DNA of 64,000 nucleotides from Macrostomum lignano (GCA_002269645.1 NIVC01001849.1:124001-188000); one strand, 5' to 3'. Positions 31,333-64,000 are shown, counted from the stretch's first letter. Made by a program: numbers and translations. The notes: a model not told the origin generated them from the sequence alone.

Positions 31333-32007
<675 letters not shown>

Positions 32008-33523: not shown

Positions 33524-33946
33524 GTTTTGAGGCACTAGCGTGCTGATACACTCGAATGTGGTCTTATCGGCGTTCAAAATACTGATACGAGCTATGCTAT
33601 TACAAACTTATCATAGATATTTATAATGTTAGACGCACCCATTTACCTGTACTAACACAGCTTCGTACCCCTTGCGTGCCCCCTCTGTGTTAATTCGTCT
33701 AACTAGCAAACTATGAAAAAAGCAAAAAGGATGGGTAGGGCGGAAAAATACCACGCCACCACCCAACACTACCCCCGAGCACAATGCCGAGGGTTTTAAA
33801 TACAAAGCTCAAACCTAAGAAGACGACTTGTCTCAGTTCTTCAAAGCTTCTGTCTGTTGTGGCAGTGGGGGTAGCAGGCGTGTAAGGTAGTTGGCGTGAG
33901 AGGTTATCAGAGACTACCGATAAACGACCTGTTACAGGTTTAAAAC

Positions 33947-36379: not shown

Positions 36380-37054
<675 letters not shown>

Positions 37055-37889: not shown

Positions 37890-38570
37890 TTACATGAGTA
37901 GAGGGGCATAAAAGTTGCAAACTGGAGTATCATACATGAGCAATCGTAATCGTGCTAAGAATTGGTCGTAGGAGGCGAACAGCAGGCCGCAGGAGAGTTG
38001 CTTCTTTTTCTTCTTGCCGTCGTCCTGCAGCGCGTGGTAGTGTGCCCGTACAGCCTCGTTGAAGACGGCGTCCAAGTTTTTCCTCATCTTAGCTGAACAC
38101 TCGACAAAACGGTCGGCTTTGATTTCTTTGGCCAGTTGTTTGCCTTCAGCTGTGGAAATCGGGTCCTTTACCGCTTCTCCGCCGACTTGATCGTCCCGGG
38201 TATCGGTCTTGGTTGCAACGAGAACTACCGGAGAACGGCTGAACCCGCCGAAGTGACGCAACTCCGGCACCCACTTGGCTTTTACGTTTTGACAGCTATC
38301 TCTGTTATCCACTGAATAGCACAGCAAGAATACGTTGGTGTCTTTGTAACCCAATGGCCGCAGTCTGTCGTAGCTCTCCTGCCCGGCCGTGTCGTATATG
38401 GACAGCCTTACTGCCTTTCCGTCAACTGAAATGTAATGCGAGCTATCGTCGGCCACGGTTGGCGTGTACTCTTCCGGAAATTTGTTCGATGTGTAGACCA
38501 GGACCATGCTGGTCTTGCCAACTGTGCCGTCACCAACCAGCACTAACTTTATCGTGACTGTGTTCGACAT
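37890..38570 (-). CDS. Divergent Rho GTPase, copy C, read-through C-terminus
   Basis: MSNTVTIKLVLVGDGTVGKT..YTPTVADDS..DTAGQES; CGLL is followed by 29 extra residues. Confidence 0.75.
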   Translation of the reverse strand: MSNTVTIKLVLVGDGTVGKTSMVLVYTSNKFPEEYTPTVADDSSHYISVDGKAVRLSIYDTAGQESYDRLRPLGYKDTNVFLLCYSVDNRDSCQNVKAKWVPELRHFGGFSRSPVVLVATKTDTRDDQVGGEAVKDPISTAEGKQLAKEIKADRFVECSAKMRKNLDAVFNEAVRAHYHALQDDGKKKKKQLSCGLLFASYDQFLARLRLLMYDTPVCNFYAPLLM

Positions 38571-38951
38571 GTTTTGAGGCACTAATGTGCGCTCGAATGT
38601 GGTTTAGAACTTTGCTTCTTATAGCCGTAGTAAATCAAAGGGAACTTTCTAATAGCTGTGGTCCTTTCGCGCACAGAAGTTTCTGAATTTCTCCGACATG
38701 CTGAACAGCTTCTTATACCGGGCGTGCATGCAGCTAATTGTCTGTTCATCTTCTCATAAACTTGCGTTCTTTAGTTTCTAATTATAACTGAAAATTTCTA
38801 TAGCTCAACAGTCGTGCATACGAGCAAGTCTGGCCGCATTGCAGCTTTAATTGAAGCGGATTCGAATAAATACGAGTAGTACAGTCATTTAGTTTTCCTG
38901 AGCATTGCAATGCAGCACCTTTAAACTGAATCAAAAAGTGGGGTATCTGGA

Positions 38952-42352: not shown

Positions 42353-42934
42353 TTAGAGAACGCTGCAGCTAGGGTTTGGCTTCCTGTGCGGCTTTGTTGG
42401 CATCATCACTGCTCGAATGGCCTCATCGAACACAGTTTTAAGTCCCATCTGCATGCGAGCTGAACACTCCAGGTACTTAACCGCGTTGATCTCCTTGGCT
42501 AGTGCCAGGCCCTGCGCCTGAGAAATCGGAGCCTGATTCTTGCTCTTTAGTTTATCAATGGTATCCTTTTCCTCCCGAAGGTCCATCTTGGTTCCAACTA
42601 GCACGATTGGCTTGTTAGGACAGTGGTGGCTCACCTCCCGGTACCATTTGGCTCGGACATTCTCATAGCTGGCTGGGCTTACTAAGGAGAAGCAGACCAG
42701 GAACACGTCCGTATGCGGGTAGCTCAGCGGCCTCAGCCTGTCGTAGTCATCCTGGCCTGCCGTGTCCCACAGGCCTAAGTTGATGGGCTTGTTATCGACC
42801 ATGACGTTTGCTGAGAAGCTGTCGAACACTGTTGGAATGTACTCGCTTGGAAAGGTGTTGGTTGTGTAAGAAATCAACAGGCAGGTCTTGCCGACACCTC
42901 CGTCGCCGACAACAACGCACTTGATTGACTGCAT
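42353..42934 (-). CDS. Rac-like GTPase, intronless, 193 aa, CAAX intact
   Basis: [39 protein letters not shown]; ends CSVL. Confidence 0.94.
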
Positions 42935-44358: not shown

Positions 44359-47300
44359 ATGCCACGAAAGTGGTGCTCCTGGTCATGGAGCCCGACGCAT
44401 CAGGAGAGTTCACCGGAGCCGAGCCGAGTTCAAACCAGCATCAAGTGCCTTGCAGTCGGAGACAGAGCCGTTGGCAAGTCCTCGCTGTTACTTACTTTAG
44501 CTCACGAAGGAGCAAGGCTGGTTTTTTTAATCAAACAGAACTCATCAACCATTTTGGAACGAACAAGGAAGCTCTTCTTGCTGGATATAGGGTGCTTCGA
44601 AGGAGACTCAAACAGACAGGTGAACATTGACTACTCCCAAGCAGATGTGCTTCTCGTATGTTTCTCTCTAGTCGGACAGGGCAGCTTTGAGAGCGTACAG
44701 ACAAGGTGGCACGCTGAGTTGAGTCAACGCTGTCCAGAAATTCCAATCATTCTTGTTGGAACGAAGCTGGACCTGCGAAACGACAGCTCAACAATCGTCA
44801 GGTTAAAGGAGAGGGATCAGGCACCCATAACAAATCAGCAGGGCATGACAATGGCAAAGAAAATCAATGCAATGAGTTACCTTGAGTGCTCCGCCCTGAC
44901 TTGTGATGGTCTGACTGAAGTCATCGGCGCAATCGTAAGAAGCAGTGTTTCGGGATCTCCAAGAGATTCAGTCACAGTGGCACGGAAACCAAATCACAGA
45001 AGGTACGCTTGTCAATAAAAATTTAATTTTAAAGTATATTCTTCGATAGTAAAAGTCATGGAATCAGTAAATATTAGTAAATCTCATATTAACTGACGCG
45101 AATACTTGCATTGTAAACGTGATAGAGTGGCCATCACATAGTTACATGTGAAAAGCGTGATTCAACTAGACAGATATGTAAAGATATTCCAAGAGAAAAG
45201 TTTCCTAAGACATAAACATCTCCAGGACCTTAGCTGAGGTTATCAGTACAAAGTTGCCATTGGTACGGTATTGCACCTGATGAATTGTTTCTTCTCAGTG
45301 ATTTCTTCAAGTTACTCTGGAAACTTGCACGACTGATTTCTAGGAGGCTTCTCGGCATCAGGTCTTTCTTCCGCTCGATAAGGGAATCCTGGAAAATGAA
45401 CCCAGTGTTCAAACTAAGTTATGATTTGTAAGTAATACTCGAAGTCTTCATAAAAAATTTGCAGGCCCCTGCTATTGCCAGATATCCGCAATTGACTTTG
45501 TGCTTTCAATTTATAGTTCCATAATCGATGCACCAACTGAAGATTGCGACAATGATGACTGTGTATACGATTTACTTCAGGATGCAGCGACGGGTATTTT
45601 GACTGCGTGAGTAATCCAACCATTTTTCCTCAGATGCAGAGCCACAGTTCAACGTTGAAAATAATCAAACACATTTTTAGTTCGGAAGCTGAACCCTGTT
45701 CGGAATACGAGATTGTTGATTCGGACGATGAATCGAACGGAAACAACGCTAGTTCGAACAATCGACACTATGAGAAGACCGAACTCAAGCACGCAGTTCA
45801 AACTGATTTTCTACAGCAGAGGGATGACCTTGCGGAGAACAGTGCTAATGGGTGAGCAGGAAATCCTTTGTAGACAGAGCCGCTGTAGCTCGTACTTCCC
45901 CCTGTAGTGTGTGTGTATTTAGGGATCAACGGACTGGGCATAACTGTTTGTCACTGTGCTAGCTTCTGGCGTACTTGCCATGCAGAGCACAAAGCCCTAA
46001 GCTAACTAAGTTGTACAATGTAAACGCACATTTTTACAGCGAGGAGGAAAGAAAACATGCTGATTTTACGTCAACAAAAATGGACAAAGTATCGGAGCAA
46101 GAGTTAAGGCAACCAACAACAAAGCGGAAGATCGTGCTGATCGGTGACGAAGGCGTGGGCAAAACCTGTCTGATTTTGTCCCATGCCAAACGCATCTGTC
46201 CTGCTGACTATGTTCCTACTGAAGCTGACGATTGTATTCCTAGCTCGGATGGCAGCGCCGACCTCGGTCTGTGGGACCTCAGCGGCTCGAGGGACTTCGA
46301 CAGAGTGCGGCCAGAGAGCTACGGACTGGCGGGCGTCATCCTCATCTGCTTTTCCATAGCCAGTCCATCCACTTTCGACAGCGTGCTTAACCGCTGGCGG
46401 CCGGAGGTGGCTCGCTACTGCCCTGACGCCCCAATTATTTTGGTTGGGACCAAAGCAGACTTGCGGACTGACCCAGTCGCTCTGAAGAGGTTGCGACGCA
46501 TGAGACTAGTCCCGATAGCTCCAACCCAGGGCGATGACCTGGCCAAGGAGATCGGCGCTGTCGCCTATCTGGAGTGCTCGGCCTTGCATCGAATCGGAAT
46601 AGACGATCTCTTTAAAAAGGCTTCACAGGTTTCTTTCAGGCAAGTTTGGTTTTCGATGATTTTTATGAATTTCTTTGCAAGTCATTCTGAAATCTAAAAA
46701 AATCAAGAATAAGCTAGAGTTGATTGGTTTGATGTTATTACGATTTCACAGAATTTTCTATATTTTCTATATCCATACACTAAAATGGTCTTTTCCGCTA
46801 GAAATATTTAATCAGGGTTCAGCTTTGAGTTTTAAAGTTTGTCTTAATCTCTGTAAGTCTTTGAACATTTGAGTTCTTAAATCTTAAGTAATCGATACTG
46901 AATCGGCCGATATAAATATCCACGACAGACAGGCAGATGATTGAATTTGAATTTTTCTGTGGTTGAATTGCACTACTGCTCAATGTGTTATGTTCGCTGG
47001 GATAAAAAAAGTGCTTTCAGACATACAAGCCATAAATCTCATATTCTATCGATACTAGATTTATTCTTAGTGTGATTATTATAGCTTTTTCCAGCCATTT
47101 TAGGGCATTTGCGCATTTAAATTAATCCTTAAAGATGCTTCCCAAAGTAATGGAGCTTTTGTCTTTGGTACCAAGGCTGGCATGGCACTGCAGCATTAAT
47201 ATTGGTCCAACAGGCATCAATTTGGTCCATAGCGGCTATGAAACCCTATCACGAGTTTGTAATGCAATTTTTCACTTTACCAGTGCAAGGTGACGTCAAA

Positions 47301-48622
47301 AATGCAATCTGCTCAACTATAACAAAGAGCATTTTAGTATGGTCGAAACGTTGCTTTAATCAGAAGCCCTTGATGTTCGTTCGATAGCCTAGCGTATGGC
47401 CAACGATTCAAGACCAGATTTTGCACCTCTTCAGCAGTTGCAAATGAAGCATTGTTTTCGTCCACATTGCTTGATAGTCATGCCTAAATGAAAATCTAGG
47501 GGTGAAACTATAGAGCTATGGACCGGATTGATGCTTGTTGGACCAAATTAAATGCAGCTGTGCCATCCTTGCTACCATAGACAAAAGCTCCGTTACATTG
47601 GTAAGCATATCTTGGATTCAATTAAATGCGTAAAAGCCCAAATGAGCTGCAAAAAGCTTTATCATATTTAATCAGTATCGACTACGAACGTGAAAGAGAT
47701 AAGAGATCCGCGGCACAAACACTCTTGTTTTATGCGTTTATGGATTCACTTAAGTTGATAATTAGCTAAAGCTTTCCTCTCAAATTTACCATCCAGACGG
47801 GATGACGTCTACGCACATGTATACAGCGAAGCGAAGTCCTCTCACCCTAGAGTTCCGCGGCCGCCGCCTCTGCCGCCGCATCCGAATGAATTCTACAAGG
47901 TCACATCGCCGCAGGGTCTTTGTCTTGTTGTGAATATTTACAAATACGATAAAGGCTTCAATCTCGAAAATCGACTTGGATCCGATTTAGATGTAAAGCG
48001 AGTAGAGAGCGTCTTTCGCAAGCTCAACTTTCAGGTGACAGTGCTGGAGAATCTGAAGTGTCACGAGATTGCAAAGCTCATGAGCAAAATAGCAATCTCC
48101 GAAGAAACTGAGTCACACGGCTGCTTCTTCTGCTTTTTGATGGCCCACGGCTCAAACGGACGCATCTACGGAAGCGATGGCGAGTCTTTGGAGATTCGCT
48201 CGATCCTGGAGAGATTTCGCGCCAACCAGTGCTTCAATCTGCGTCACAAGCCGAAGGCGTTCTTCATCCAGGCATGCCGTGGAAGCGACAATGAGTCCGA
48301 GAAAGATACTCAGGTGGACAAGTTTGTCTCTGACAACACGGGATTGCACTGTCCCTTGGACAGCGATTTCCTGTTGTGCTACGCCACAACCGAGGGCTAC
48401 TCTGCCCTTCGGGACAAAGAAGGTGGTTCACCATTCGTGCAGACCCTGTGCGATGTACTTGAAGAGCGACACTCAAGTGAGCACCTGGTGGATATCATGA
48501 CTAACGTAAACTGTCGGCTCAAGGAGAACCCGATCAAAGAGAAGAGCCAAAATTTGTATTCCGTAACCGAGACTGTCACCAGGTTGTCCAAGAAGTTTTT
48601 CCTTGATCCAACTCTCGCATGA
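44359..48622 (+). CDS. Predicted Rho-like/Rho-like/caspase fusion gene (gene W), 746 aa. Exons: 44359-45002, 45681-45851, 46040-46639, 47797-48622; optional exon 45299-45361
   Basis: Donors AG|GTACGC, GG|GTGAGC and CAG|GCAAGT and acceptors TTTTTAG|, TTTACAG| and ATCCAG| are all phase 2; exon total is 2,241 nt with no internal stop. The caspase frame has MAHGSNG and QACRG and no in-frame ATG upstream of the domain. Confidence 0.65.
47082..47663. mobile_element. MITE with about 165-bp imperfect terminal inverted repeats, in the Rho-caspase intron
   Basis: 47082-47250 is the reverse complement of 47497-47663 (GGAGCTTTTGTCT, TTGGTCCAACA.GCATCAAT, GGTCCATAGC blocks). Confidence 0.8.
47797..48622 (+). 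CDS. Caspase catalytic domain exon (p20+p10) preceded by a Pro-rich segment
   Basis: FYKVTSPQGLCLVVNIY, RLGSDLD, CFLMAHG, PKAFFIQACRG, DSDFLLCYAT, ALRDKEGGSPFVQTLC, TRLSKKFF. Confidence 0.93.
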
Positions 48623-50329
48623 TGTTTTGTTAATATTTTAACGTCTGCAGTTCTCAACAAAATAGTGCGCTCGAATAGTGGAAGTTATCTGCTATTTTAA
48701 TTTAGACCAATGATCACTTTGATCGTTTGGTCACAGACTAATTAACTGATAAAGTCTTTCTAGATCTTGTGCGTTCCATTCAAGGATTGATACGAGTATA
48801 TACTGCCTGATTGCTGGGGTCTGAAGACGAAAATCTTAACTACGCAAAGCGAAGGACCTGCCCTGCCATTCACTGTTATTGGATGAAATTTCAAAAAGTT
48901 TTTTTGGAATTCTCTATGGAGTCTCGTTCCCTAATTTAATCAGAAATTTAGTCTAGCTGAGCTATAGTCTGAGCTATAGACTTTCGTGTCTTCGATTCCA
49001 GTGTCGCCTTATTTGAAAGAATAAGGGACATCAGGGCGGAACATTTTCGTGTCGTTTGAGTGCTCATTGCTACTGAATTGGCAAAAGTACAAGATAAACA
49101 CTTGGAAACTAAAATCTGCACTAACAAATGCTTGACTCGAGTAACCAGGGTGGGCAGAACTTGTAGCTCAATTTGACCATAGACAAAATTTCTGCTTATT
49201 GTGGGGCCAAGGTTCAACTAAAATTTCATTCAATAGCAGCGAACGGTAGGAAAAGTCGCTCACTTTGCGTAGTTAAATTTTTCGTCCCCGGACTGTCAAT
49301 CCAGGTACAACTAGTACTGTTAAATCTCATCAAACCAGGTGTTTACGATTTTTGTTGACTTGTTGACGGGCCGCTTTCAGTGTTGACGATCTCACCGCCT
49401 GCTATCTAGTTAATAAACACAGTTTTGATTACGAGCCGTGAGGATTTGCGAACCCAAGTCAATACGGTATATTGCGCATATTTTTAGTTAGCAATTAGTG
49501 AGTCAGTTTGCAGGACTCTGTTCTGACTGAATATTGTGCTGATAATAATGAATAAATACGTATTACTTGCAGTGTGATAAGATTTTCAGTGCAATCTAGA
49601 ATAATAATGAATTATTAATACGTATTTTACTTTATGCAGTGTGATATAGACATTTTCCTATACTTGTATATTTGTTTAGGAAGCATATCTATCGAATAGG
49701 TACATGTAAACTCATCATGCTATTGTAAATGTCAGAGTTACGAGCGGACTTCGCATGTGCAAAACTTAGGCCAGGGGCTGTTCTATCCAGAAAAAAATGT
49801 CAATAAAAGTGACAGATACAAATTTTTCTTTATTGCACCTTGTCACTTCAAAAACTACAAATATACAAAACACAGCCCTGCTGATCCAAAACTTCTGCGT
49901 TGCCTGTCTGCAGTTACGAAACCGAATCGGGGTGAATTTCCAGGCCCGCATTGCAGCGGAAGCTTTTGTTGCTGGAAGCTCGACTTTGCAAAATAGGGAA
50001 ATCTGGACCATGAGGAGAGAATAGTGTTGTAAAGTCTGCCATCAGCACTCTATATCGATTTTTGTCTCTTTACCAAGACATGCATGCAGCTCACTTCCGG
50101 TGACAGAATTCACTCTTCTACATGCCTCTCTATCACAAAATGCGAGCATTAACAGTTGTATAAATGCATGGCATCATGCACAGCTGAATTCTTAAGTACA
50201 CTTGGGTGTGTTGCGATAAGCTTGAATGTACGTTCGTCAAGTCGACTCGTTGTGTACATAACTGTTTCAGCGCAGAAATTGTTGCCCCAACCATTAAGGC
50301 TAAGAAATGATTAAGTGTGGATTTGCTTA

Positions 50330-50645
50330 GTTTCGATTTGGCTCTTGATCTACAAGCTAAAATGCCAATCTCGAAGTGAACCGTTGCTGGCGAGCCATCT
50401 AAGCAACGAATCAATTTTCCACCGTCCTTTCTACAAAAATATCTGATGCCTATTTAGCCTCTGTTTGAGCAATAGAGCCCTAACAACCCAGTTATTCTGG
50501 TTGGATCCAAGCAGAACTTCCCAGAGCGACAAGACAACCAATAAAAATGGAGAGAGAAAAGAAGTGGACACCGATTTCTAGACGATAAGCGGAAAAAATT
50601 AGCTACTAAAATCAAACAAATATTTTAAGAGCTCCGCACCTATGA
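50330..50645 (+). pseudogene. Heavily decayed Rho-like remnant
   Basis: Broken frames give RPFYKN, PNNPVILVGSK, WTPISRR*AEKLATKIK and KYFKSSA, which follow the order of the Rho C-terminal half. Confidence 0.5.
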
Positions 50646-50968
50646 GTTTGACTACTTATAAGAGTTTGACTCAAGAGTGTTTTCAAAAGAGCCCGTTGAA
50701 AACGATACCGTGACAAGAATCGCTAAAGAGCCATTGCAAACAACTCACTAGTGACTCTTGTGCGTCTGGGGCGACTCTTGTGACTTTTTAACAACTAAAA
50801 CTGCGACGGAGAGGTGACTGTTGCATCACAAGCGCATCACGTGAGTTTTAGAATCGTAAAAGAGTCGCGAAAAAGTCGTCCAATAATCGTTGTGCTGGCG
50901 CTTAAGTTCCTACAACTCGGTAGGCTAGTTTAAGTGCAATTAGGGTTCATAGGCTAATACTGAGTGTT

Positions 50969-51781
50969 CCTCGCCCGATGAAAACGGTACCTAGGCCAAG
51001 AAGTGTCCCGGAATCACTTGCGTCGCCTCAGAGTCGTTTCCGACGTGTTGCAGATGACAGGTCAATTAGGAAAGAAGTGATTCGAAACGACTCTAAAACG
51101 ACCAGATGAATTCGAGTCACATTTCCGGCGTTTCAGAGGCGTTCTGCAGTCGCATAAGAGTCGCAGAAGCTCTTCAGCGTTGCTGTAGAATCTTGAGCGC
51201 ATCACTTCTGAGCCGATGAGCATGCGTTTTCTATTCGCCAAAAAATGGCCGGTAGTAACGACTCTGTAACGCGTCCATAACGCCTACGAAGTGACGCACT
51301 AACGATTCTACAGTGACGCTAAAGCTCTTCTTCTGCGACTTTTTTGCGACTGCAGAGCGCCGCTGAACCGCCGGAAATGTGAGTCTAATTCATCAAGCGA
51401 TGCAAATGCGCTTCATTCACAACTCAGCGATTATAATGCAACTCTGGAACGCTTCAAGTATGACTCTACGTCCCCCATAATTGTTAGGCTCGTATACCGT
51501 CGCCCCAGAGTCACTAGATTCGCGTCAGAATCACTTGCGTCGCCCCAGAATCAGAGCCGCAGACAAGCCGCAGACAAGTTTCAAAGTGATTCTGGGGCGA
51601 CTCTTAGACGACTTTTTGGCGACTTTTACCGTAGATGTCGTCGTTTTAGAGTCGTTTAGAGTCACTTCTTTTCTATTTGACCTACTCTGTATGTCATCTG
51701 CAACGCGTCTGAAACGACTCTGGGGCGACGCAAGAGACTCCGGGACGCTTTTTGGCCTGGGTACCGTTTTCATCGGGGAGG
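50969..51781. mobile_element. About 810-bp near-palindromic MITE/foldback element
   Basis: Ends CCTCGCCCGATGAAAACGGTACC.. and ..GGTACCGTTTTCATCGGGGAGG; arms stay complementary for about 190 bp, plus an inner inverted pair (about 51105-51140 / 51360-51395). Confidence 0.8.
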
Positions 51782-52029
51782 TCACAAGGATTGTCTTAGC
51801 TATAGCGCTTCTCAAAGAATAAAGTTAGAATTAGAAATTTAATTTTAGAAACTTCGATCGTTTCACCCTATGCCACTCTTTACCGAACTATTCGTTCGGG
51901 TTCTTATTCACACTCCGTGCTTTTAGAAGAAGACGTAAGTTTTCTGACAAGCAAACCTGGCTAGCTCCTATATAACCTATGAATCAACATTTCATTTGCA
52001 TGCTACTACTCGTATAGTGTCTAAGCACT

Positions 52030-52660
52030 GGGAGGCCGCCTCGCCTTACTTGCCCAGCTACCTTACGCGGGCACCGTTGAGACAAAATCAGATCCTTGCC
52101 GATGGGGTATTTAAATTAACTTGACAACAGGTACCATCAGGTGACATCCCCAGGGCCTAGAGCTTTGGTTATTAATCTCTGTGAATTCAATCAGAATGAA
52201 TAGAGACGGCTCACAGACATGAGAGCCCGTGTGCACGAGAATTTGAAGTGCAACTAGATTGCTGAACTACGTAAAAACTGCTTCGCACTCATCTCTAAGA
52301 TTAAAGATCACGGATGCTTTTTCTGCTTCATAATGGCTCACAGAATGCACGATCGGATCCATGGTAGTGACGGCGAGCCTCTAGAAATTCAATCCATCCT
52401 GGGCCGCTACTAAGTTAGAGAACGTACTTGGTCGATCCGAACTACTCGATGGACAGCGAATTCTTGATGTGCTACACCAACACTGAGGACTACATAGCTT
52501 TCAGAGATGAGATCAATTTATTCAGGCCATGTGCGACCTCGAGAAGGCGCATGGAAGAGCGCATATCGGACATGCGGACTCATGTAAATAAGCGCCTCAA
52601 ACCCGGACTGCGGCAGGAGGCAGCAAAGTTTTTGCAGTCTCGCAGACGGCGTTGCAGTCA
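52030..52660 (+). pseudogene. Caspase pseudogene, paralog of 47797-48622
   Basis: YHQVTSPGPRALVINL, HENLKCN*IAEL, DHGCFFCFIMAH, IHGSDGEPLEIQSILGR, DSEFLMCY, FIQAMCD. It has an in-frame stop and the QACRG segment is deleted. Confidence 0.85.
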
Positions 52661-53001
52661 TCAAAGAAATGCTTTCTACATGTAAATCCAACCCCTGGCT
52701 GATCTTGATGGCAGTCTCCAGTGACTCGACTCTATTAAGTTTAAAAGCAGACTTAATTAATAAAAGCAGACTCATGTAATTCAACTCCGAAGCAATGGGT
52801 CAAGAGTTTTAATTCTAATGGTGCTCTTAATTAAAATGTTTAATTTTTAGTTTTTCCTCGGAAAGTTTTTTTTCAGAAAACTACTCGACATTCTTCGTGA
52901 CGGTTGTAGACTTGCTCACTTAGTATGCTACTCGTACGAGTAGTAACTTGCAGTATATTTTCTTTGATACATAATTCTGTAAAACATAGGGGGGACTTGA
53001 A

Positions 53002-53080
<79 letters not shown>
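53002..53080. repeat. (TC)n microsatellite with a TCTGTC leader
   Basis: Directly visible. Confidence 0.97.
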
Positions 53081-53081
<1 letters not shown>

Positions 53082-53477
53082 TTTTCTGCCCTCTTTTATT
53101 CTTAAACATAAATAGAAATTTCAAGCACACAAACATTTACCTGCTGGCCTTGATGGATGTACAGATACTATTTTGTCTACTTCTCTACTTCGCCCAATGC
53201 AGTGAAAACTCAGAGGCCCTCTTTTCATTCTTCTGCCTTTTTTGTAGTTCGCCTGCTTACCCGTCTAGACGTACACGGTGCTATCAGAATCGCGGAATTG
53301 TGCTGTCTTCTGTTTTGTAAGAGCTAAATATAACTCCGGCCCTTTCTATCCAAATATGTACACCCGAAACATCACGGATGAGAAATAACGATGTAGAACG
53401 TTATTTAGTGCCTCCTTCGACTTGGCAGTTAACCCAGCTCTGCAAAAAAACTTGTCGGAAGTTTGATAGCAGCAATC

Positions 53478-55827
53478 ATGAGAATGATCAAATGTGTTAT
53501 TGTTGGCGACTCTACCGCTGGCAAGACCTGCATGATTGAGACCTACGTAAATGGCTCAATGCCAGACACGTTTATTCCAACAATTTACAAAACGTACTCA
53601 GCTCGGCTGCCCATGGAATCGGAGTCTATCGAACTGGCGCTGACAGACACGGGAGGCAGTGAAGGCTACGACACTCTCAGACCAGTCGCCTATCCGCAGA
53701 CAGACGTGTTTATCATCTGCCTTGACTTGACCAAGTCAGCCGAACTTGTGCTTGGCAATGTGCGTACAAAGTGGTACCCGGAGTTGAGCCACCACTGCCC
53801 CTCAGCACGCATTATTTTGGTTGGAACAAAGCTTGACATGCGAACAGGTTTGAAAATAAGCGAGACCAAGGAAGAAGATGCTGAGAAAAACCTTACAGCT
53901 GAGCAAGCCAACGAATTCGTCAAGGAAATCAATGCGGCAAAGTACATGGAATGCTCCTCAATTACTCAGCAAGGATTAAAAGAAGTGTTCGAAGAGGCCG
54001 CTCGCTTAGTTCTTAACTCTTCTGACGCTCGCAATGGCAAAAAGAAGAAAAATGAACACCACGGGTGCGTAAAGATAGTTTCAGCCACTGTTTGAGTTCA
54101 CTTGTAGGTTAAAAATGTTGTACATGTGTATCAAGAATCTTTTATAAAGGGCCAACAGAAGTGAAAGTTATCAGCAAAGAGCTTTGAAAAATAATCAAAG
54201 CTCTTTAGATTCTGGCTTGGGTACTTCTCGAGTTTTTTCACAGATTTAAAATGCACGAGCTATCAAAATGCGTGAGCGAGAACGCTTTCAAAAACAAGAT
54301 CGCCACACACTACTTAACAACTTGCAATAATTTCAGAGATTCCAAGAAAGTCGTTTCGTTCCTTCATTCGCTATCGTCGTCGAGAAGGAACTCTGAAACG
54401 TCTATCAAGTAATTTGCTGGAGCACACTTTATTCCTGAAATATATTCATTAAAATATTTTGCAACAAGATTTCCAATGAACCCTTGCAGGCAAAGTGTTC
54501 TTTCCGATGGTGGAACCAAAGATTCCGAGACCGAAACTTCACCTGATGAGCCGAGCATTAAGTAAATACTCTAGCTCCTCTTCTGGAGTAATTTTTGTTT
54601 TAAAATTCTGTTAGAATTCTTTTTAATTAGCCACTAATACGAGTTTTTTGCACGAGCTTATTTAAAAAAACTTGCAGATCTCCATCATCGATTAAAGCCT
54701 TTTTCCGCGGTTTACGCCCTGGGAAAACATACTCGTACAATATCGCATCGTACGACTGTTTCTTAAATTTGAAATTATTCAGAATAATAGCATTCCTTGC
54801 CAAAACCAGAGCAGTGGAAAATGTATCCCATATGCTCATATTTTTTAGACAACAGAAGTCGCACGATAAGAAAACCAAAGCTTCGAGTGAAACTTGCGAG
54901 CCAGCGGACACTTCATCCGCTGAAGTTTTGGATCAGCCCCAACAGCCTGCTTCGAGGTAAGCTTTTTCTAACTGGAACTCAAGCTATGAAGGATTGCAGA
55001 CACAGTTATCTGTCTACGGGAATGCGTAATCTTCCCTCTTAACAATGTCTTGCAGTACACAAGAAGCCGTGAGTCCCGAGCTCAGCGAAGACGAGCAGCC
55101 GACATCCGAAACAGAAAGTGACGACGAAAGCTCGGACACGGAGTCCGCCAGTGCTCAGCGAGAGCCAGTCTCGGAAAACCTCAGAGAGCCTAGTTCTCGA
55201 GTTGATTATCCGGAAACTATTGTCGTGTTTCGAACCGCCGAATCAAAGACGAAGAGTGACACAATAACATTAAAAGTCGTCATAGTTGGAGATGAAGCGG
55301 TTGGCAAGACCAGTCTGCTGACCGCATTCGCAGAGGACCAGTGTCCTCAGGAGTATGTTCCCACAGAGACCGACGACTGCTTTGCCGTGGAGGGTTCACT
55401 GGCTGGAAGCCAACTGTGTCTCCGCTTGTGGGACGTGAGCTGTGCGGAGTCCTTTGACCGCTTAAGGCCTCTGCGGTATCGCCAATCAGATGTGTTTATC
55501 ATCTGCTTCTCCCTCATCAATTCTGCTAGTTTCGAGAATGTACGGGCCAAGTGGTACCCGGAAGTGAGCCGTCATTGTCCTGAAAAGCCATTTATCCTGG
55601 TCGGAACGAATTCCGATCTGCGCGATGACCCAGAGACCATCGACAAGCTGGAGGAAAGGAATCTCGTTCCAATCAGCGTGACTCAGGGCGAGCAGTTGGC
55701 TAAAGAGATCGGTGCTGAAGTGTATCTAGAGTGCTCCGCTCTGTGTAGAACAGCTGTGGAAGACATCTTTAGACAGGCGGTATTGGCTTCCGTGAGAAAA
55801 ACAGAAAGCAAAAATCATCACGGGTAG
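53478..55827 (+). CDS. Predicted tandem atypical-Rho gene (gene Y), 555 aa if it stops at 55827. Exons: 53478-54064, 54337-54408, 54490-54561, 54678-54734, 54849-54956, 55056-55827
   Basis: Domain 1: GDSTAGKT / DTGGSE. Domain 2: GDEAVGKT / YVPTETDDC / DVSCAE. Five GT-AG introns, all phase 2, keep an open frame. A further phase-2 donor at 55824 may extend the gene. Confidence 0.6.
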
Positions 55828-57517
55828 ATCGATCGAAATTGAATACAAGAAACCAACGCACTCATGACAATATGGGCTAAATCTGTATTCAATACAAATC
55901 GTGCATGACAACCTCTATTAGCAGTACCATTTTAAACGCATATTCGGCTCCATATTAAAATGATCCTGAATTCACAGTACCTGCTGTTTTTCGTTCGTAC
56001 TCTCGTAGCTTTCGATTTCCAGACTCATAAGAACTTTAACATAACTTGTAAGCCAATATCATCAGTTGCTTTGGTCCGTCTTTGATGACATTACACCATA
56101 TGTGCAGACGCTTACGCAGGACCCGTAACTTGATAGATACGAGCGTAGATTAATGGATTAGGTCGTAGTAACTGCGCACTGTAATTGCACATGTGTTGTT
56201 GAGCAGCTCCCGTTCTTAGATTACCGTTGATTCTTAACGTACTCATTTTTTCACATTCACATAGTTCCCTTGATATTCAGTTGTAAATAGGCTTGCTATT
56301 TTTCTGCCATATTTTCACCTTAAAACTATCAGTAGCACACAGATTCTTTGCTTCTTTTGTTATCATGCAGTGTGTTGAGGTCTCATCAAATTCAAATGCA
56401 GCGCCCCATTTTTAGATTTATCCATATTTTCTGCGCCTTCCTACTTTAAGTGACTTTTTGAGCAAAATATCTCCTTTAAGCAGAAATTAAAGGAGACTAA
56501 ATAAAATATTTTTTGTTACCCGCTACTCTCTGATAGCTGCCGCACGTGTTTCTTTAGACCTAAAGAAATGAGCTTTATTGAAAACCAGGCCTGAATTTTA
56601 GTGAAGATTACATGGCATACGAGGGTACTAAGCATACGACGTATGTCACTGTATGTTAAATTTAATGTCGAATGCATGTAAAAGTCGACAAGTAAAGCAA
56701 GTCTGCATCTTCAATAAAGCGTCTCACAAACGACAGTCAATCATGCTTTGCAGTCGGGGTCGCCATCCATTAATTGTCAGATTAAAAATGGCACCGAAAC
56801 GGCGTTTAAAAGTGCGTGAGAAGGTCGCAAAAAGAGGTATCTTATGAAAGACACTCTTTGAGTACAAGGTTGGCGCTTACAGCGTTATCAGAGTGCTTGC
56901 ATGAGAGGCTGGGTGCTGGCGGAATATACGAAGTAGACGGAGTAAGGCAAATACGAGCCATAGCTCTCTGTTGTCTACTCTCTCTACTCTTGGCTCCAAG
57001 GTTGCTTGGTCGTATTGGAGAGGAGAGTTGCACTCAGCAGCATCACCGTCACGTCTTCAGCGTAAGCCAGGCTCGAGCTTCTACTCTGCAATATGCAAAC
57101 AGATTTTTTTCGAAACCCTTTTTCAAAGAATTTTTTTTTGTTTATTCGCTCCAGCTCAAAATGTGCTACAAAATGTGGTGCTTGAGTCAGATTCAATGGA
57201 GCTGGCCTGAAGAACAATGCGTTTCTGATATCAATGATATTGTGCTCAAATGAATACCCCTCTTCCCTCCCCCTCCCCAGCATTAGGGCCAGTGTTTTAT
57301 GCTTGCAATAAAGACAGTTTAAACTGAAAGATGGACGCTTCATGAACAATAACGAACGTTAGTTTCCGAGGGCATTTTATCCACTAGACTGCAGAGCAAA
57401 GAATTACCATCTTAAATTGAATGCAATCTTGAAAATGAGACGGGACTTTGCCCAGTTGTTTTTTAGGTATACAGCGTTGATAGACAGCCTGGCGCTAGCA
57501 GCTGACAGAGCAGCAGC

Positions 57518-60500
57518 ATGAGTTCAAACAAGATCAATTGCCTCGCCATCGGCGACGAAGCGGTTGGCAAGTCCTGCCTGATTGACTGCCAATTAGGCAT
57601 AGAATTCCAGCGCATGCACATCCCCACTGACTGCTTTAAGAAACACAGCATGGAGAGCACTTTAGAGGGACACACATTTCAGATCACACTGTGGGACTCG
57701 CCCAGTAAGGACGAATGCTTTGTCGACATGCCGAGTTACCCAAAGGCGAATGTTGTGCTTCTCTGCTTTGCCATCGATTGCCGAGCGAGCTATGAAAACG
57801 TGAGAAGAAAATGGTTTAAAAGGTGCAGAAAGCTCTTCCACAAGGCGTCCTTTATTCTGGTTGGAACCAAGCGGGACCTGCGAGACAGTTCGACATCGAT
57901 TAGTCAGTTCGAAGGCCGTGATCTGCGAAAAATTATCAACGCTGAGACTTACAAAGAGTGCTCCGCTCTGAATCCTGAGAGTGTCCGGGAAGTTTTTGAA
58001 GAGATTATTTTCACGAAGTACAATCAGACTTTGTCAAAAACAAACAAAAGGTACGTGTTCATTTTACTTTTTATTACTTTTCGTCTGATATGCCTTACGC
58101 TGAATATTTTACTACGCTCTCCTAATATTCGTTTCCTTTAAACTTTATTGCAGCAGGGCACTAAGTATTCTCCCGTCAAAAGCCATCTTTTGGAGAAGAA
58201 CTAAGAGTTCGAACGAGTACAGGTATCTTTTATATTAGAATGGCTACGTGTACGAGATGTTCTTGGTCTCGAATCATTTGATTGCGTCTTTGATTCAGAG
58301 AGTATCGACCATATCTTATCTGATACTGCGTGACAATATTCTCTGTGCAGATTTCACAATTTGCCATTGTAGCATCCTTTAGTCATTGGTGTCTCAAGTT
58401 CATCAGTAAATTGCACTGATGACCTTCACGAAAATGATAGGAAGAGCAACGCAAAAGCGCGAACAGTCAATACTCTCTTTATCTGTCGCAAACAAAACAG
58501 TAAATTAAAATCATTTTCTTAGAAAAAATTAACCGTGAAAAAATAATCATATTTCCTCAATAGTGCCCAAAAAAACTGATGAATGTGAGTATCTACAACC
58601 CGATCCGATTCGAGCGGCGACACGTGATCAAGGAATCGAACCGTAAGCTTAAAATTTTTTGGTGTTCAATCTCGACAACTTGTTTAAGTTTGCTCAGTAT
58701 ACTACTAGCATACTACATGTACTCAAAAGCTCCAGTTGGGTGCGCTGACAAAACAATGCTGTTCTGCTCTGCTTAAAAAAATCTGAAAAAAATTTAAGCT
58801 CCCGTTTACTTTCCATCACTCATATGAGAGGCGCCGCAACTGCGGTATTTATTTACAGACTTATACCTATCAATAGCCAGTAGTAGTTTTCCATTGATTA
58901 AAAGAGTTTAAAAGCAAATTTACCAAAGTGGAGTTCAAAAAAGGCGGAACAGAGTCACCGGAAAACGCGTCTGACTCTCGCGATGCGACCTCCCTCTGGT
59001 ACCTCATTTGATTAAATGAACACCCACATCAACTTGGCGCTTGCACTCGTAAATTCTCGTCGTGCTTTTCACACCCTTGTGGGCAACCCCCCCCCCACCC
59101 TATAGCACAGAGAGTGCACATGCCTGACAATTAGAAAGTCAAATTGCGGGCAACCCCCCCCCCTATAGCACAGAGAGTACACATGCCTGGCAATTAGAAA
59201 GTCAAATTGCGGGCAACCCCCCCCCCTCCAAGGCACGGAGAGTTGCACATGCCTGGCAATTAGAAAGTCAAATTGCGGGCAACCCCCCCTCCAAGGCACG
59301 GAGAGTTGCACATGCTTGGCAATTAGAAAGTCAAATTGCGGGCAACCCCCCCCCCTCCAAGGCACGGAGAGTTGCACATGCCTGGCAATTAGAAAGTCAA
59401 AGGGCCGCTTTACAAATTTGCGTACAGAATGAGTTCAGGAGTCAGCGGAATCAGAATTGCCTCAGCGCCGGGTTGTGGGACGATTTCGCACATCACATTC
59501 CCACGTCACACAAAGCGATGCGTCAGGGTGCCCACAGCCCTCCTGCAAATATGAGCGTTCTTCGTTATTTCTAAAAAAAGTCGGTCTTCCCTAGTTGAGG
59601 ATCCCCCATCAGTTACGGTGCTTGAAAAATGTCGAAATAGGGTGCCTACGTAGTCTCGCACCCAATGCCTGCTGAATGTCCGGAAGTTTCGCCTAGAAGA
59701 AGGCCGTTAAAGTCAGAGACAATAACGAAATTTGAAGGCTTGGCAAGGCCGCACTGAGTTGCAGCGCTTGCTCGTAATTTCTGCCTAGGGGGTGCACTGA
59801 ATGCATTCTGAGGGAAAAAATCCGGACCTTCTGGCAAAATCATTGAATATCTTTGAATATCATTGTTGAATATCATTATTATTGAATGTCATTGAAATCT
59901 CGGACGATTTCGAAGGCTAGTGACATGAATCTTCTTTGACCATGTGCGAGAAAAATCTAGCCATCCTTGTGAATTTTCACTGTAGCAAAAATGTCTGGCT
60001 GGATCCTTAACAGAAATTGTTTTTTACTCTTCCTGTTATTAAACATAAAATTCGTTTTCTTCAAATGAAATATTTCTAGAGATTTTGATTATCCTTTGGC
60101 CGGAGCAACTGGAGGCGCCGATCCAGACATCTATACGTGTCCGTCTATAGATTTATACAACCGGCATGGCTACATGAAGGCGGATGTTCAGGCAACAAAT
60201 CCGTGAGAAAAAGAAATTTTATTTTACGAGCTACATTTGACTACTCGCAATAAAACATAATAGGGGCGCTTCACAAGAAATTTCACAACTTTGAAAACCC
60301 GTGCTAGTCACTCCCGCAATCCAAAATTTAAAATAACTTCGCGATATGAAAATTTGAGCTTGTGAAGTTTCACTCTTCAAAAAAGTAACAGATAAGACTT
60401 TTCCAGGATGTGAAATTTCAAACTGGCGAATGCGACCCCGAAATTCTTAAAATGTACAAATACGAGCTAGCTTGACTAATTACATGACTTACGTAGAGGC

Positions 60501-63500
60501 AGAATGGGCATACCTCACTGAGGATTTTTTCCTGGAGGCAGCGATGTCTGGCAACACAGTAACGTCCCGAGGGCCATATGTCCTTGCGGTTGAGTTGGAC
60601 AGGGCCTGCGGAGGGTGGGGGAATGACAGGAGATAGGCACGCGGGATTTCCGGCAGTTGGGGTGTTAGCCCACCTCTCCCTGTGCTGCCACCCACTGATT
60701 GATCCGGGTGGTGACAACGTACAAATAGCTACTTGAAAGCCTAATTTAGGTCAAATCTTTCTCTTCAGCAAACAGGAAACTCTTCAGCTTAGATTTCTGC
60801 ACTTTTGAGTATCACTTGAAGCCAAAGTGTATCTTGAATAAATCGATCAGCTATCGATATCTTGAAATAATTTCTGATATACAAGAGAAAATATTCAATC
60901 TATACTACTTATAGTACACTTTTAATATTTTTTGTTTCGCATCTGGGGTCTTTACTCAAACCATCAAGCCGACGTGATAAAAGCACTAAAACGGTTATTT
61001 GCAGGACTAATGCGGGCTGCTACAACAGGGAGGCTACAAATGAAGAATATGTGTACGACTATATTGATGATGAGCTATCGGAATCTAACAAACAAGACAC
61101 AATTCAACAAAGTCCGTTCAAGACTGACGACCTTGGTCAGAGGTAGGCATGCAAGATTCTCTTAGTGTGTCTTTCTGGATATATTTGCAATGCTCTTCCT
61201 TGAAATTCCCTCCACAGAGCACCTTAGATAGTTAATACGAGCGTATGTAGTGCACAAGTTTAATAAACAGTTTAGTCACAATTTCAACTGTCACAGTTTA
61301 GATTTGCAAACCAAAAACTGGCCCGCGAAACAATAAGGACTGTGAGACCAAAGATCCCTTACGAGACCGGAGAGGAGAATGAGTAAAGAGTGGAGAGGGG
61401 AGATGAGAGATGGAAGTAAAGAAAGGAGAGGATGGGAGAGAGGATAGAGGGGAGAGGGGAGATGAGAAAGGAGAAGAGAAAATGAAAAGAGAGCTGAGAA
61501 GAGACAAACCTTGAGCGGATGGGATTGCGATTGTGAAGTTTCAAAGGACTGGAGGGGCGGAAAGAGAGGCTTTGAGGGCCGGAGTTTGACAACCTCTGGG
61601 ATAAGACCAAGCTTTGACAATTGGCTTATTTTTGTTGCAATTTCTCTGTACGAGCTAAGCTATTAGTCCAACGACCTTATGTAGATTATTGCTAATTTAT
61701 TGTGAATTCTGAATTATAAAGCCTATTATTGAGCCTTCATCGAAGAATATTCAACCTAGTTGTAGGGCTTTACACGATTAATCAACTTCAGTTAACTGAT
61801 AATTGAACGCAACAATATAACTTAAACATTTCTACACCTTTGAAGGCCTCTACCACAAGCCCAGGAAATACCTCTGCCACCACCACAGCTTCTGCCTCCA
61901 GTACCTGACAGGTACATATTTTTTGCATGAAACTTCTAAATCAATGATAAAAGCGTTATGATTTTATCCTAGTTTTCAACTAAAAATCAACAAACATCGA
62001 ATCGTTTTAGAGCGTTAAAAAAGAGACAGGTTCAAATGAAAGCAGAGCAAGAGGAACGGAACAAAAACATAGCTGCCGTTGTCCCTGCGTTGAAACTAAA
62101 AATCAATGTCGTTGGTGACGAGAAGGTCGGCAAAACCTGTCTGCTCGTGGCCTATGCTGAAGGACTCTGCCCAGTTGAGTATGTTCCTACTGAGACCGAC
62201 GACTGCTTATCAAAAGAGGTTCAGGTAGATGGATATACGATTCGCGTTGGCCTGTGGGATAACAGTGGCTCGAGAGACTATGACCGAATGCGGCCGGGAA
62301 ACTATGAAGGGACAGACGTCGTCCTCATCTGCTTCTCCATTGCCAGTCCCGCTACCTTTGACAGCGTGCGCACCCGATGGCTTCCAGAGATAGCTCTTCA
62401 CTGCTCGAACACTCCAATAATTTTGGTTGGGACCAAGATGGATGCGCTCGACGATAGAGTTGAAATGGAGAAACTGCACAGAAAGCGGCTTGCTCCCATC
62501 AGCAGCTTGCAGGCGACAGCTCTGGCCAAAGATATTGGCGCTGAATTGTACATTGAGTGCTCGGCTCTGAGAAGATCGGGGCTAGATAGCCTTTTCAAGG
62601 CGGCCGTAAGAGCGGCTTTCGAAAAACAAAAGTAAGATTTTTTAAGCATCTATCTCAAAAAAACTTTGCAACAGCAACAGCTGAAACTATCGTTTTGTTG
62701 TTCCTACGCTCGTATTATGGTAAAGTTTCAACGATGATGGGGGTTCTTTTGTCCACCATTAGATTTTGCGTCTTGTTTTTACAGAAAAATTCTGGAAGTC
62801 GGCTCAATACAAGAAAAGGAAAGCAGCAAAACTGAAGCCTCAGAGCCTCACGATCAGCTGGATGAGCCTCACCGTGATTTCGACGAGTGTAACGAATTTG
62901 CCTCGTAAGTTAACTTGAAATATCCTATTAAAAAGTATACATGCAATAGATGATCACCGAATCTCACATTTAAACAGTGCTCAAAGTTTCGACTCCAACG
63001 ACCATAGAGACGTGGAATATGACGTTTGTTCTGGCCAATCTGAGGGTTTATTTAAGCCCCATAAAGCACAGCCGCCGGTTGTGCCTCCGCATCCGATTCC
63101 AAAGCCGCGAGGTATTCGTCGATTAAACTCCAGTACTGAGGCACAGTCAGGAGTCATCGAACAAACAGAAGTTTATCCTTCACAGGAACCTACTGGACCC
63201 GCTGAACAAACTGAAGTTTATCCTTCACAGGAACCTACTGGACCCGCTGAACAAGCTGAAGTTTATCCTTCACAGGAACCTACTGGACCCGCTGAACAAA
63301 CTGAAGTTTATCCTTCACAGGAACCTACTGGACCCGCTGAACAAACTGAAGTTTATCCTTCACAGGAACCTACTGGACCCGCTGAACAAACTGAAGTTTA
63401 TCCTTCACAGGAACCTACTGGACCCGCTGAACAAACTGAAGTTTATCCTTCACAGGAACCTAGAGTTTCGTTCCAAGCTGCGACACAAAAGTTAAACGAT

Positions 63501-63508
63501 CTGAACAG
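57518..63508 (+). CDS. Predicted tandem atypical-Rho gene (gene X), 3'-incomplete. Exons: 57518-58050, 58154-58222, 61005-61142, 61846-61911, 62011-62631, 62785-62904, 62978-63508
   Basis: Domain 1: GDEAVGKS / DSPSKD. Domain 2: GDEKVGKT / YVPTETDDC / DNSGSR. Acidic Tyr-rich, Pro-rich and repeat exons are all flanked by phase-2 GT/AG sites. The last donor is AG|GTGAGC at 63509. Confidence 0.6.
59080..59402. repeat. About 62-bp tandem repeat, 5 copies
   Basis: Unit GCACATGCCTGGCAATTAGAAAGTCAAATTGCGGGCAACCCCCCC(CTCCAAGGCACGGAGAGTT). Confidence 0.92.
61300..61600 (-). mobile_element. hAT-type MITE related to 38952-39300, inverted
   Basis: Reverse complement reads CAGAGGTTGTCAAACTCCGGCCCTCAAAGC..., with the same GGCCCTCAAAGC block and pyrimidine-rich interior. 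Confidence 0.6.
63159..63461 (+). repeat. In-frame 45-bp coding repeat (EQTEVYPSQEPTGPA), about 6.7 copies
   Basis: Period is 45 (CACAGG at 63181 and 63226); it lies inside the open exon 62978-63508. Confidence 0.92.
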
Positions 63509-64000
63509 GTGAGCTCTGGGTGCATGCACTCTTTTACTCTTGCGCTAGACTAAAAAAAATTTTTATGTTCGGATTTTGGCAGTTAGCAAAGCATGGTGTC
63601 TGAATTGAGTGAAAGTAGGTGAGCAGGAAGGTGTCTGACTCTCGTGCCAAGCCAAATTACGAGTGACTTTGGGCTTTTGCGAGAAAATCAAGCTTATCAA
63701 ATTATTCTTGACAATCTCCGAGGTACAGAGTGTGTACATGTTTGACGATAAGAAAGTCAGGGTTGCTTACATTGTGTGAGTGTGTGCCTTTGTACGTATC
63801 CGTGTGCGTTCGCGTGCTCAGGGGTTAGAGGAATAGGTATTGCTGTTTACCTTCAGGATTCTTTATTTTGAGGCCTTCATTTTGCAGGGGTACTCAACGG
63901 CCCTCTTTGAACTGACTAAAATAACTGCATTTAAATAATATCGAAGCTACATTACGACCTACAAAATCGTAATTCAACAATTCCAGACGAAACAAGGAGG

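Follow-up and report, generated by a model that had tools for sequence, protein, structure and literature searches.

We describe here a small gene family of the free-living flatworm Macrostomum lignano, in which two divergent Rho-family G domains are placed in one polypeptide and, in two of the three genes, are followed by a caspase domain. The genes, which we call W, Y and X, lie in the 3' part of the window, the 64,000-nucleotide (nt) stretch of DNA that was analysed (NIVC01001849.1:124001-188000, plus orientation; all positions are window coordinates). From their exon structures, domain content and catalytic motifs, we propose that W and X encode tandem-Rho caspase zymogens in which the Rho pair would serve as the prodomain, and that Y encodes a protease-less relative; we give this explanation as a whole a probability of about 0.55.

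The genome of M. lignano is partly duplicated, and the locus has a second copy on NIVC01003792.1 (the duplicate locus below), the two copies being 99-99.6% identical. The contig stretch 174174-198755, which repeats window positions 50174-64000 base for base and adds a further 10.7 kb, carried the analysis beyond the window. The GenBank gene models of M. lignano rest on RNA-seq data and on a de novo transcriptome, processed with StringTie, TACO, TBONE and TransDecoder, and not on ab initio prediction (PMC5730564).

Gene X joins two Rho-like domains to a caspase

57518..64755, plus strand (window part 57518..64000): gene X, 10 exons; the duplicate copy is annotated as PAA49772.1, 1015 residues
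57518..58050, plus strand: exon 1, degenerate Rho-like domain (GDEAVGKS, DSPSKD) with an 11-residue deletion in the Rho insert
58154..58222, plus strand: exon 2, 69-nt linker
58564..58642, plus strand: exon 3, 79 nt in the window and 78 nt in the duplicate locus
60080..60202, plus strand: exon 4, inside which the coding sequence annotated on the window contig starts (ATG 60174)
61005..61142, plus strand: exon 5, tyrosine/acidic linker (EEYVYDYIDDE)
61846..61911, plus strand: exon 6, proline-rich linker (PLPQAQEIPLPPPQLLPPVPD)
62011..62631, plus strand: exon 7, GDE-type Rho domain (GDEKVGKT, DNSGSR, TKMD, ECSAL)
62785..62904, plus strand: exon 8, acidic linker with DQLD and RDFD
62978..63508, plus strand: exon 9, PPVVPPHPIPKPR at 63072-63110, then a tandem repeat
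63987..64755, plus strand: exon 10, caspase, 769 nt, 255 residues, its first 14 nt inside the window

PAA49772.1 starts at the ATG of exon 1 and runs through a Rho domain, linkers, a GDE-type Rho domain, a proline-rich stretch, seven copies of a 15-residue repeat and a caspase domain, with two Pfam matches to Ras and one to Peptidase_C14. Each of the ten exons has a counterpart in the window, with 94-100% identity between the copies. The product annotated on the window contig is PAA63380.1 (757 residues, gene span 60174-64755, a 100% identical match), which contains the GDE-type Rho domain and the caspase only (Pfam Ras, Roc and Peptidase_C14) and is reproduced exactly by seven exons (60174-60202, 61005-61142, 61846-61911, 62011-62631, 62785-62904, 62978-63508 and 63987-64755).

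A reading made from the sequence alone (the sequence-only reading) had pointed to an open phase-2 donor at 63509 and suspected a caspase beyond position 64000. The donor (GAACAG/GTGAGC) is real, and in PAA63380.1 it is spliced to a phase-2 caspase exon. Inspection of the downstream DNA located this exon at 63987-64755, so that the suspected caspase is there while its placement has to be corrected: the exon begins 14 nt inside the window. Its acceptor (ttccag/ACGAAA) is in phase 2, and its AHG and QACRG motifs are intact. The proline-rich PPVVPPHPIPKPR of exon 9 had been likened to RVPRPPPLPPHP before the caspase of gene W, and both stretches were located, the latter within the W caspase exon itself. 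The repeat that follows in exon 9 is a 45-nt unit present 6.8 times at 63159-63462 and encodes (EQTEVYPSQEPTGPA)x7. The other two long exons of X likewise end at phase-2 donors (AAAAG/GTACGT at 58051 for exon 1, CAAAA/GTAAGA at 62632 for exon 7).

The shorter product of the window contig can be traced to exon 3, where a run of seven A residues at 58569-58575 stands against six in the duplicate (at about 8577 of the duplicate locus) and shifts the frame by +1; consequently, the open reading frame (ORF) is annotated only from exon 4. This homopolymer insertion had escaped the sequence-only reading. It may be a real mutation or an assembly error; the other indels between the two loci lie mostly in homopolymers and simple repeats.

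Two short terminal exons after 63509 (at 63857 and 63888, each with a stop) were rejected in favour of the acceptor at 63986, and an earlier exon chain for X (734 residues, read-through end) was unmatched in the protein collection, one exon and the caspase exon being missing from it. In the 1.4-kb intron 3 of X, a tandem repeat at 59077-59401 has a 63/129-nt unit with C8-10 runs, and the two loci differ in its copy number and in the length of the C runs. Immediately 3' of X and beyond the window, a complete-looking long terminal repeat retrotransposon (~65120-74380) has ORFs for gag, protease, reverse transcriptase, RNase H and integrase, and identical ORF-bearing repeats at both ends. No additional Rho or caspase genes were found within 10 kb downstream of X.

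Gene Y carries the tandem Rho domains without a caspase

53478..55827, plus strand: gene Y, 6 exons, 560 residues; the spliced translation is identical to PAA49773.1, annotated on NIVC01003792.1
53478..54064, plus strand: exon 1, first Rho-like G domain (GDSTAGKT, DTGGSE), ATG at 53478
54337..54408, plus strand: exon 2, 72-nt linker, phase 2-2
54490..54561, plus strand: exon 3, 72-nt linker
54678..54749, plus strand: exon 4, 72-nt linker
54849..54956, plus strand: exon 5, 108-nt linker
55056..55827, plus strand: exon 6, acidic stretch and GDE-type Rho domain (GDEAVGKT, DVSCAE, TNSD)

The Y protein consists of a Rho-like domain, a Ser/Glu-rich linker of ~170 residues and a GDE-type Rho domain (two Pfam Ras matches), and ends in KNHHG with neither a caspase nor a CAAX box. 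A short isoform of three exons (53478-54064, 54337-54408 and 54490-54565) is called as a gene on the window contig at 53478-54565; it reads through exon 3 to a TAA at 54563-54565 and equals PAA63379.1 (244 residues) residue for residue. Both proteins use the phase-2 donor of exon 1 (CACGG/GTGCGT at 54065) and fall into one 90%-identity cluster.

An extension of Y from the GT at 55824, which had been considered in the sequence-only reading, finds no backing. The stop codon of Y (TAG 55825-55827) overlaps this GT, both annotated Y models with this exon stop there, and GTAGAT at 55824 is the weakest donor of the locus by a crude score. Moreover, no caspase-like sequence was found between Y and X. 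The sole model that joins the two genes is an older automated one of 1207 residues from another assembly (UniRef A0A1I8GC..), whose phase-0 donor lies at 55792 and whose acceptor lies at 57508, with the X repeat translated out of frame; we treat this fusion as unproven. Earlier exon chains for Y (512, 488, 476 and 452 residues) were unmatched in the protein collection, two further 72-nt exons being missing from them. A (CT)n microsatellite at 53002-53081, ~400 nt upstream of the Y ATG, is 15 nt longer than in the duplicate locus.

The exons are joined by phase-2 introns

Hand-spliced exon chains translate exactly to PAA49773.1, PAA63379.1 and PAA63380.1. All 14 introns (five in Y, nine in X) are GT-AG introns in phase 2, and the internal exons are multiples of 3 nt long throughout (72, 72, 72 and 108 nt in Y; 69, 78, 123, 138, 66, 621, 120 and 531 nt in X, with exon 3 at its length in the duplicate copy), so that with phase-2 flanks any module could be skipped in frame. 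Transcript-derived models thus join the Rho exons through phase-2 linkers, which bears out the proposal that Y and X follow the plan of W, with a Rho-like exon, short linkers and a GDE-type Rho exon. The boundaries that had been assigned from the sequence were exact (53478 is the Y ATG, X exon 9 ends at 63508, and 54065, 58051, 62632 and 63509 are donors), and the account of the linkers, of which there are four exons in Y and five in X between the Rho exons, was probably incomplete.

Matches to Pfam Ras, PF00071, fall in four plus-strand ORFs, at 53463-54095 (E = 2e-35), 55045-55827 (4e-37), 57518-58141 (7e-26) and 62036-62635 (1e-34). Read as separate single-exon Rho transcripts, these frames would give read-through products; we searched the called genes for the read-through ORFs of the X GDE exon, Y exon 1 and the Y GDE exon (ATG 55045) and found no record of them, while the spliced products are on record, which contradicts the single-exon view. 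We therefore regard, with high confidence, the gene structures of Y and X as settled. Y and X are real spliced genes, and they are expressed, since their models are transcript-derived.

In the public databases the proteins are labelled 'hypothetical protein' (GenBank) and 'Caspase family p20 domain-containing protein' (UniProt). Homology queries with single domains missed the locus's own proteins, whereas the full-length spliced X query retrieved them; in the case of Y, the representative of its 90% cluster is the 244-residue form, which has no GDE domain. The notion that the locus-tag 'g2' marks the second gene of a transcription unit was rejected, as the prefix denotes a 95%-identity transcript cluster and the suffix most likely numbers its members.

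Gene W and the descent of the family

44359..48622, plus strand: gene W, annotated as one 804-residue gene with Ras and Peptidase_C14 matches
52135..52693, plus strand: caspase pseudogene between W and Y, interrupted by in-frame stops and a frame change, and without the QACRG region

The caspase domain of W matches PF00656 with E = 5e-46. The three large open segments of W total at most 749 residues against the 804 annotated; both Rho exons and the caspase exon must therefore be included in the product. Many exon chains from a splice-site dynamic programme and a combinatorial search fit W, and the two that were tested were wrong. What we say of W is thus drawn from its annotated span, length and Pfam content, the exact chain (with a possible GC-AG intron at 46640) not having been recovered.

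The pseudogene resembles the W caspase (51% identity) more than the X caspase (34%), and it is present in the duplicate locus too. Its decay implies that the family has also lost members. In a neighbour-joining tree, the three GDE domains cluster (92% bootstrap), with the second domains of X and W as sisters (99%), while the first domains of X and W group weakly (55%). This fits a local family in which W, Y and X would descend from one tandem-Rho ancestor, Y having branched first.

The Rho domains have substitutions at the catalytic positions

The six domains, denoted W1, W2, Y1, Y2, X1 and X2 by gene and order, were aligned to the canonical Rac1 of the window. The P-loop motif GxxxxGK[ST] is kept in all six, and in the second domain of each gene it carries the signature GDE (VGDEAVGKT in Y, VGDEKVGKT in X). 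In every domain, position 12 has R, S or E instead of Gly, and position 61 has S, A, K or F instead of Gln. Likewise, none of the six has a CAAX box; Y ends in KNHHG, X ends in ESNTEK, and the Rho exons end at phase-2 donors. The residues required for GTP hydrolysis are, as judged from this alignment, lost in the Rho domains.

W2 and X2 keep the G1, G3 (DxxG), G4 (TKxD) and G5 (SAL) motifs, and the switch I sequence YVPTE[TA]DDC is common to W2, X2 and Y2. Between G4 and G5, the Rho insert region is gap-free in the alignment for five of the domains, and X1 is missing 11 residues there. The closest relatives of the domains are Rac1-type proteins (48-56% identity); to the canonical Rac1 of the window the G domains are 34-49% identical, and the four Rho exons, all of them still open, are 27-55% identical to each other. 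The GDE domains of W2 and X2 are best read as putative GTPase-dead, permanently nucleotide-loaded binding modules of the Rnd/RhoH kind, Rnd and RhoH being atypical Rho proteins that are predicted to be GTPase-deficient.

The caspase domains look catalytically complete

The X caspase (PAA49772.1) matches PF00656 with E = 1e-44 and, like that of W, exceeds the curated threshold of the profile; its best solved relatives are caspase-7, -8 and -3 (E ~1e-36). The catalytic dyad motifs are FIMAHG and FIQACRG in X and FLMAHG and FIQACRG in W. Compared with caspase-7, the S1-pocket arginines are also kept, namely the Arg of vRNGt (eRIGS) and that of SWR (SLR). The caspase domains of X and W are thus caspase-3/7/8-like by sequence and look catalytically complete. 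The nearest caspases to that of X are an M. lignano caspase with an ankyrin (ANK) region, PAA56209.1 (45% identity), and an ANK+Pkinase caspase, PAA47029.1 (41%).

In the X caspase exon, the first Met stands two residues before the catalytic His. With no earlier Met, the domain cannot be translated on its own, and the caspase can be made as a fusion only. A Pfam scan of the 1015-residue X protein gave Ras, Roc and Peptidase_C14 and found no CARD or DED. The linkers are rich in Ser, Glu, Asp and Pro and contain RxxPxxP- and PxxPxR-like motifs, DxxD sites (DQLD, DFID) and the seven near-identical 15-residue repeats.

Constraint between the two copies

Comparing the two copies, we counted 2 substitutions in 4594 nt of exons without X exon 5 and 40 in 8994 nt of non-exon DNA (Fisher p = 1e-5); the exclusion of exon 5 was chosen after seeing the data, and with this exon included the difference is not significant (p = 0.11). 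X exon 5 is a local peak of divergence, with 10 differences in 138 nt (7 amino-acid replacements and 2 synonymous changes), and divergence is raised in the adjoining intron too, possibly through gene conversion or diversifying selection. X exon 1 is identical between the copies (0 of 533 nt).

The state of the exons themselves is more telling than these counts. With only 27-55% identity between paralogues, all four Rho exons and the two caspase exons have remained open and their fold motifs are preserved, while the neighbouring pseudogene has decayed.

A proposed Rho-pair prodomain in the place of a death fold

Caspase activation is normally explained by CARD or DED prodomains, which cluster the zymogens on adaptor platforms. 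The long N-terminal region of X and W would instead place two divergent Rho G domains on disordered acidic, Ser-rich and Pro-rich linkers ahead of the C-terminal caspase. Acting as a permanently 'on' or nucleotide-independent binding module, the Rho pair would dock the zymogen onto a Rho effector, a regulator, a scaffold or another Rho domain of the same kind, and docking would gather the caspase domains and lead to proximity-induced activation. The Pro-rich motifs (RxxPxxP, PxxPxR) and DxxD sites of the linkers could supply docking and processing sites. Y, which has no protease, might compete with or regulate the assembly, as CARD-only and DED-only proteins do. That the Rho pair is the recruitment or regulatory prodomain of the caspase, in place of CARD or DED, is suggested by the layout, and we hold the chances for and against this step to be about even.

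Several observations weigh against the tandem-Rho zymogen explanation. It is from sequence and gene models that we infer function. Several G domains are so degraded that they may bind no nucleotide: DxxG or the G4 Lys is gone from W1 (DIGC, switch I also lost), from X1 (DSPS, with 11 residues of the Rho insert deleted) and from Y2 (DVSC, TNSD). Of the 12 coding nucleotides that differ between the X copies, 10 are non-synonymous. The window copy of X is frameshifted in exon 3, and its annotated product is without the first Rho domain. Finally, StringTie-type assemblies can fuse adjacent genes on the same strand.

The long fusions could also be partly artefacts of assembly or annotation, the products in vivo being shorter (a tandem- or single-Rho protein and, separately, a GDE-Rho plus caspase) and made by internal spliced-leader trans-splicing or from internal promoters. 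The window contig does annotate short products, 244 residues for Y and 757 residues from exon 4 for X; the +1 shift in exon 3 cuts exon 1 off from the rest of the window copy; and in M. lignano trans-splicing cuts multi-gene precursors, which make up about 7% of the transcripts (PMC5730564). The duplicate copy, however, has one open frame through the ten X exons and another through the six Y exons, the 804 residues of W require both Rho exons as well as the caspase exon, and X exon 1 has no difference between the copies. Even the shortest X model joins a Rho domain to the caspase, and we consider the artefact account unlikely. That the genes are functionless duplicates in decay, recent chimeras of this lineage that are turning into pseudogenes, seems to us very unlikely. 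This would agree with the adjoining caspase pseudogene, the frameshift in the window X, the degenerate G motifs and the mostly non-synonymous substitutions in X, whereas substitutions are ~10-fold rarer in exons other than X exon 5 than in the flanking DNA, the catalytic residues of the caspase and the ORFs are intact at a paralogue identity of about 45-55%, and transcript-derived models show expression.

A different function for the Rho domains can also be envisaged, in which they are baits for microbial effectors that target Rho proteins, and modification or binding of a bait would free or cluster the caspase and kill the infected cell. Parallels to such an integrated-decoy immune sensor are the integrated decoys of plant NLRs and pyrin, which senses Rho inactivation. 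The GDE domains keep Tyr32 and Thr35 of switch I, which are common effector targets on Rho proteins, while the catalytic residues that a signalling GTPase requires are lost; a lineage-specific tandem family with a dead copy and a fast-changing exon is typical of conflict genes, and the caspase belongs to an M. lignano clade that swaps its N-terminal modules. Nevertheless, baits with 34-49% identity to the window Rac1 would be poor mimics, the Gln61 target site is absent, the idea draws on sequence, and no known M. lignano pathogen has been tied to Rho targeting. We find the decoy improbable.

The surroundings of the three genes

24758-25336: canonical single-exon Rac1 ORF, an exact gene product on three GCA_002269645.1 contigs
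42353-42934, minus strand: second Rac-like ORF

W, Y and X stand at the 3' end of a cluster of ~15 Rho-family ORFs on both strands (24700-62700). The cluster contains a ~5-kb tandem duplication (31402-32007 equals 36449-37054, and 32843-33577 is nearly the same as 37890-38582). Upstream of it lie a piggyBac-like transposase ORF (5178-6170), exons with peptide repeats from a P4-type ATPase-like gene (9532-17218) and a ribosomal protein L10/L16 gene (22350-22754, Pfam Ribosomal_L16).

Comparison with known proteins

We searched 1.84 billion representative proteins with PAA63380.1 and judged the best 150 matches by the query region that they matched, a sample of them being scanned with Pfam; the collection holds one protein per 50% cluster, so close relatives may be hidden. 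Among these 150, Rho and caspase matches occur together only in two M. lignano entries, and the next best match is a triple-Rho protein with no caspase. Another multi-Rho architecture, with no caspase, is that of a 786-residue protein in which a hydrophobic segment at the N-terminus accompanies three Rho domains in tandem, split by 'TKPSGPE' repeats. In the literature searches, no account of a Rho/Ras-caspase fusion or of the locus tag came to light.

As Rho proteins, W, Y and X are like Rnd1-3, RhoH and RhoBTB in having a Rho fold with substitutions at Gly12 and Gln61 and in being predicted not to hydrolyse GTP, and RhoBTB likewise has its Rho domain in a larger multidomain protein. They differ in that a CAAX box is absent, that each protein has two G domains and that W and X add the caspase fusion. 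The likeness is one of properties only: our trees were built without Rnd, RhoH or RhoBTB references, and the nearest proteins by sequence are ordinary Rac proteins at ~50% identity. Two Rho domains per polypeptide also occur in tandem Rac/Rho models of Ostrea edulis (365 residues), Dreissena (306 residues) and Oppia (306 residues); these, in contrast, are near-canonical Rac copies with no caspase and neither GDE nor YVPTE[TA]DDC, and several may be merged models.

The nearest precedent on the caspase side is the set of non-canonical caspases of lophotrochozoans, the platyhelminth ANK-caspases and the M. lignano kinase caspase (PMC11463336), which share the caspase-3/7/8-like domain, a long N-terminal module other than CARD or DED and a single caspase; the difference is that the prodomain of X and W consists of two Rho-family G domains. 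The existence of ANK- and ANK+kinase caspase paralogues sets a precedent for prodomain swapping. In the 2024 survey of lophotrochozoan caspases, the kinase-prodomain caspase is the sole unusual M. lignano type, no other unexpected platyhelminth prodomain is reported, and the Rho-caspases of this locus are absent from it (PMC11463336). ANK-caspases are described there as confined to parasitic platyhelminths (PMC11463336), and we observed that the free-living M. lignano encodes several (PAA56209.1, PAA82384.1, PAA90489.1 and PAA63849.1). The ROCO/DAP-kinase AP-GTPase proteins likewise have a Ras-superfamily G domain in a death-pathway protein, where this domain acts as a switch or scaffold module (PMC8195603); they carry Roc and COR with kinases or repeats, whereas here the domains are Rho-type, with no COR and a caspase as the effector.

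The sequences were already public; the novelty lies in recognising their architecture, which adds a new type of prodomain to the caspases with swapped prodomains.

Implications for the evolution of cell death

Flatworms have lost FADD, parasitic species have also lost the DED caspases, and these animals appear to have invented other prodomains (PMC11463336). The present locus shows a route to new architectures, in which tandemly duplicated single-exon Rho genes adjoin a caspase exon and are joined by phase-2 introns. Such phase-2 stitching would allow modules to be gained or skipped in frame. It is a doubtful but conceivable further step that the Rho-Rho-caspases form an unrecognised class of death or immune switch, in which GTPase-dead Rho baits or sensors (for pathogen effectors or the animal's own Rho regulators) are coupled directly to a caspase without a death-fold adaptor and Y acts as the inhibitor.

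The main interest of these genes lies in the evolution of cell death. M. lignano supports transgenesis, and the idea of a Rho prodomain is therefore directly testable. If true, a switch-dead Rho pair as a prodomain would be a new link from cytoskeletal/Rho signalling, or from Rho surveillance, to cell death.

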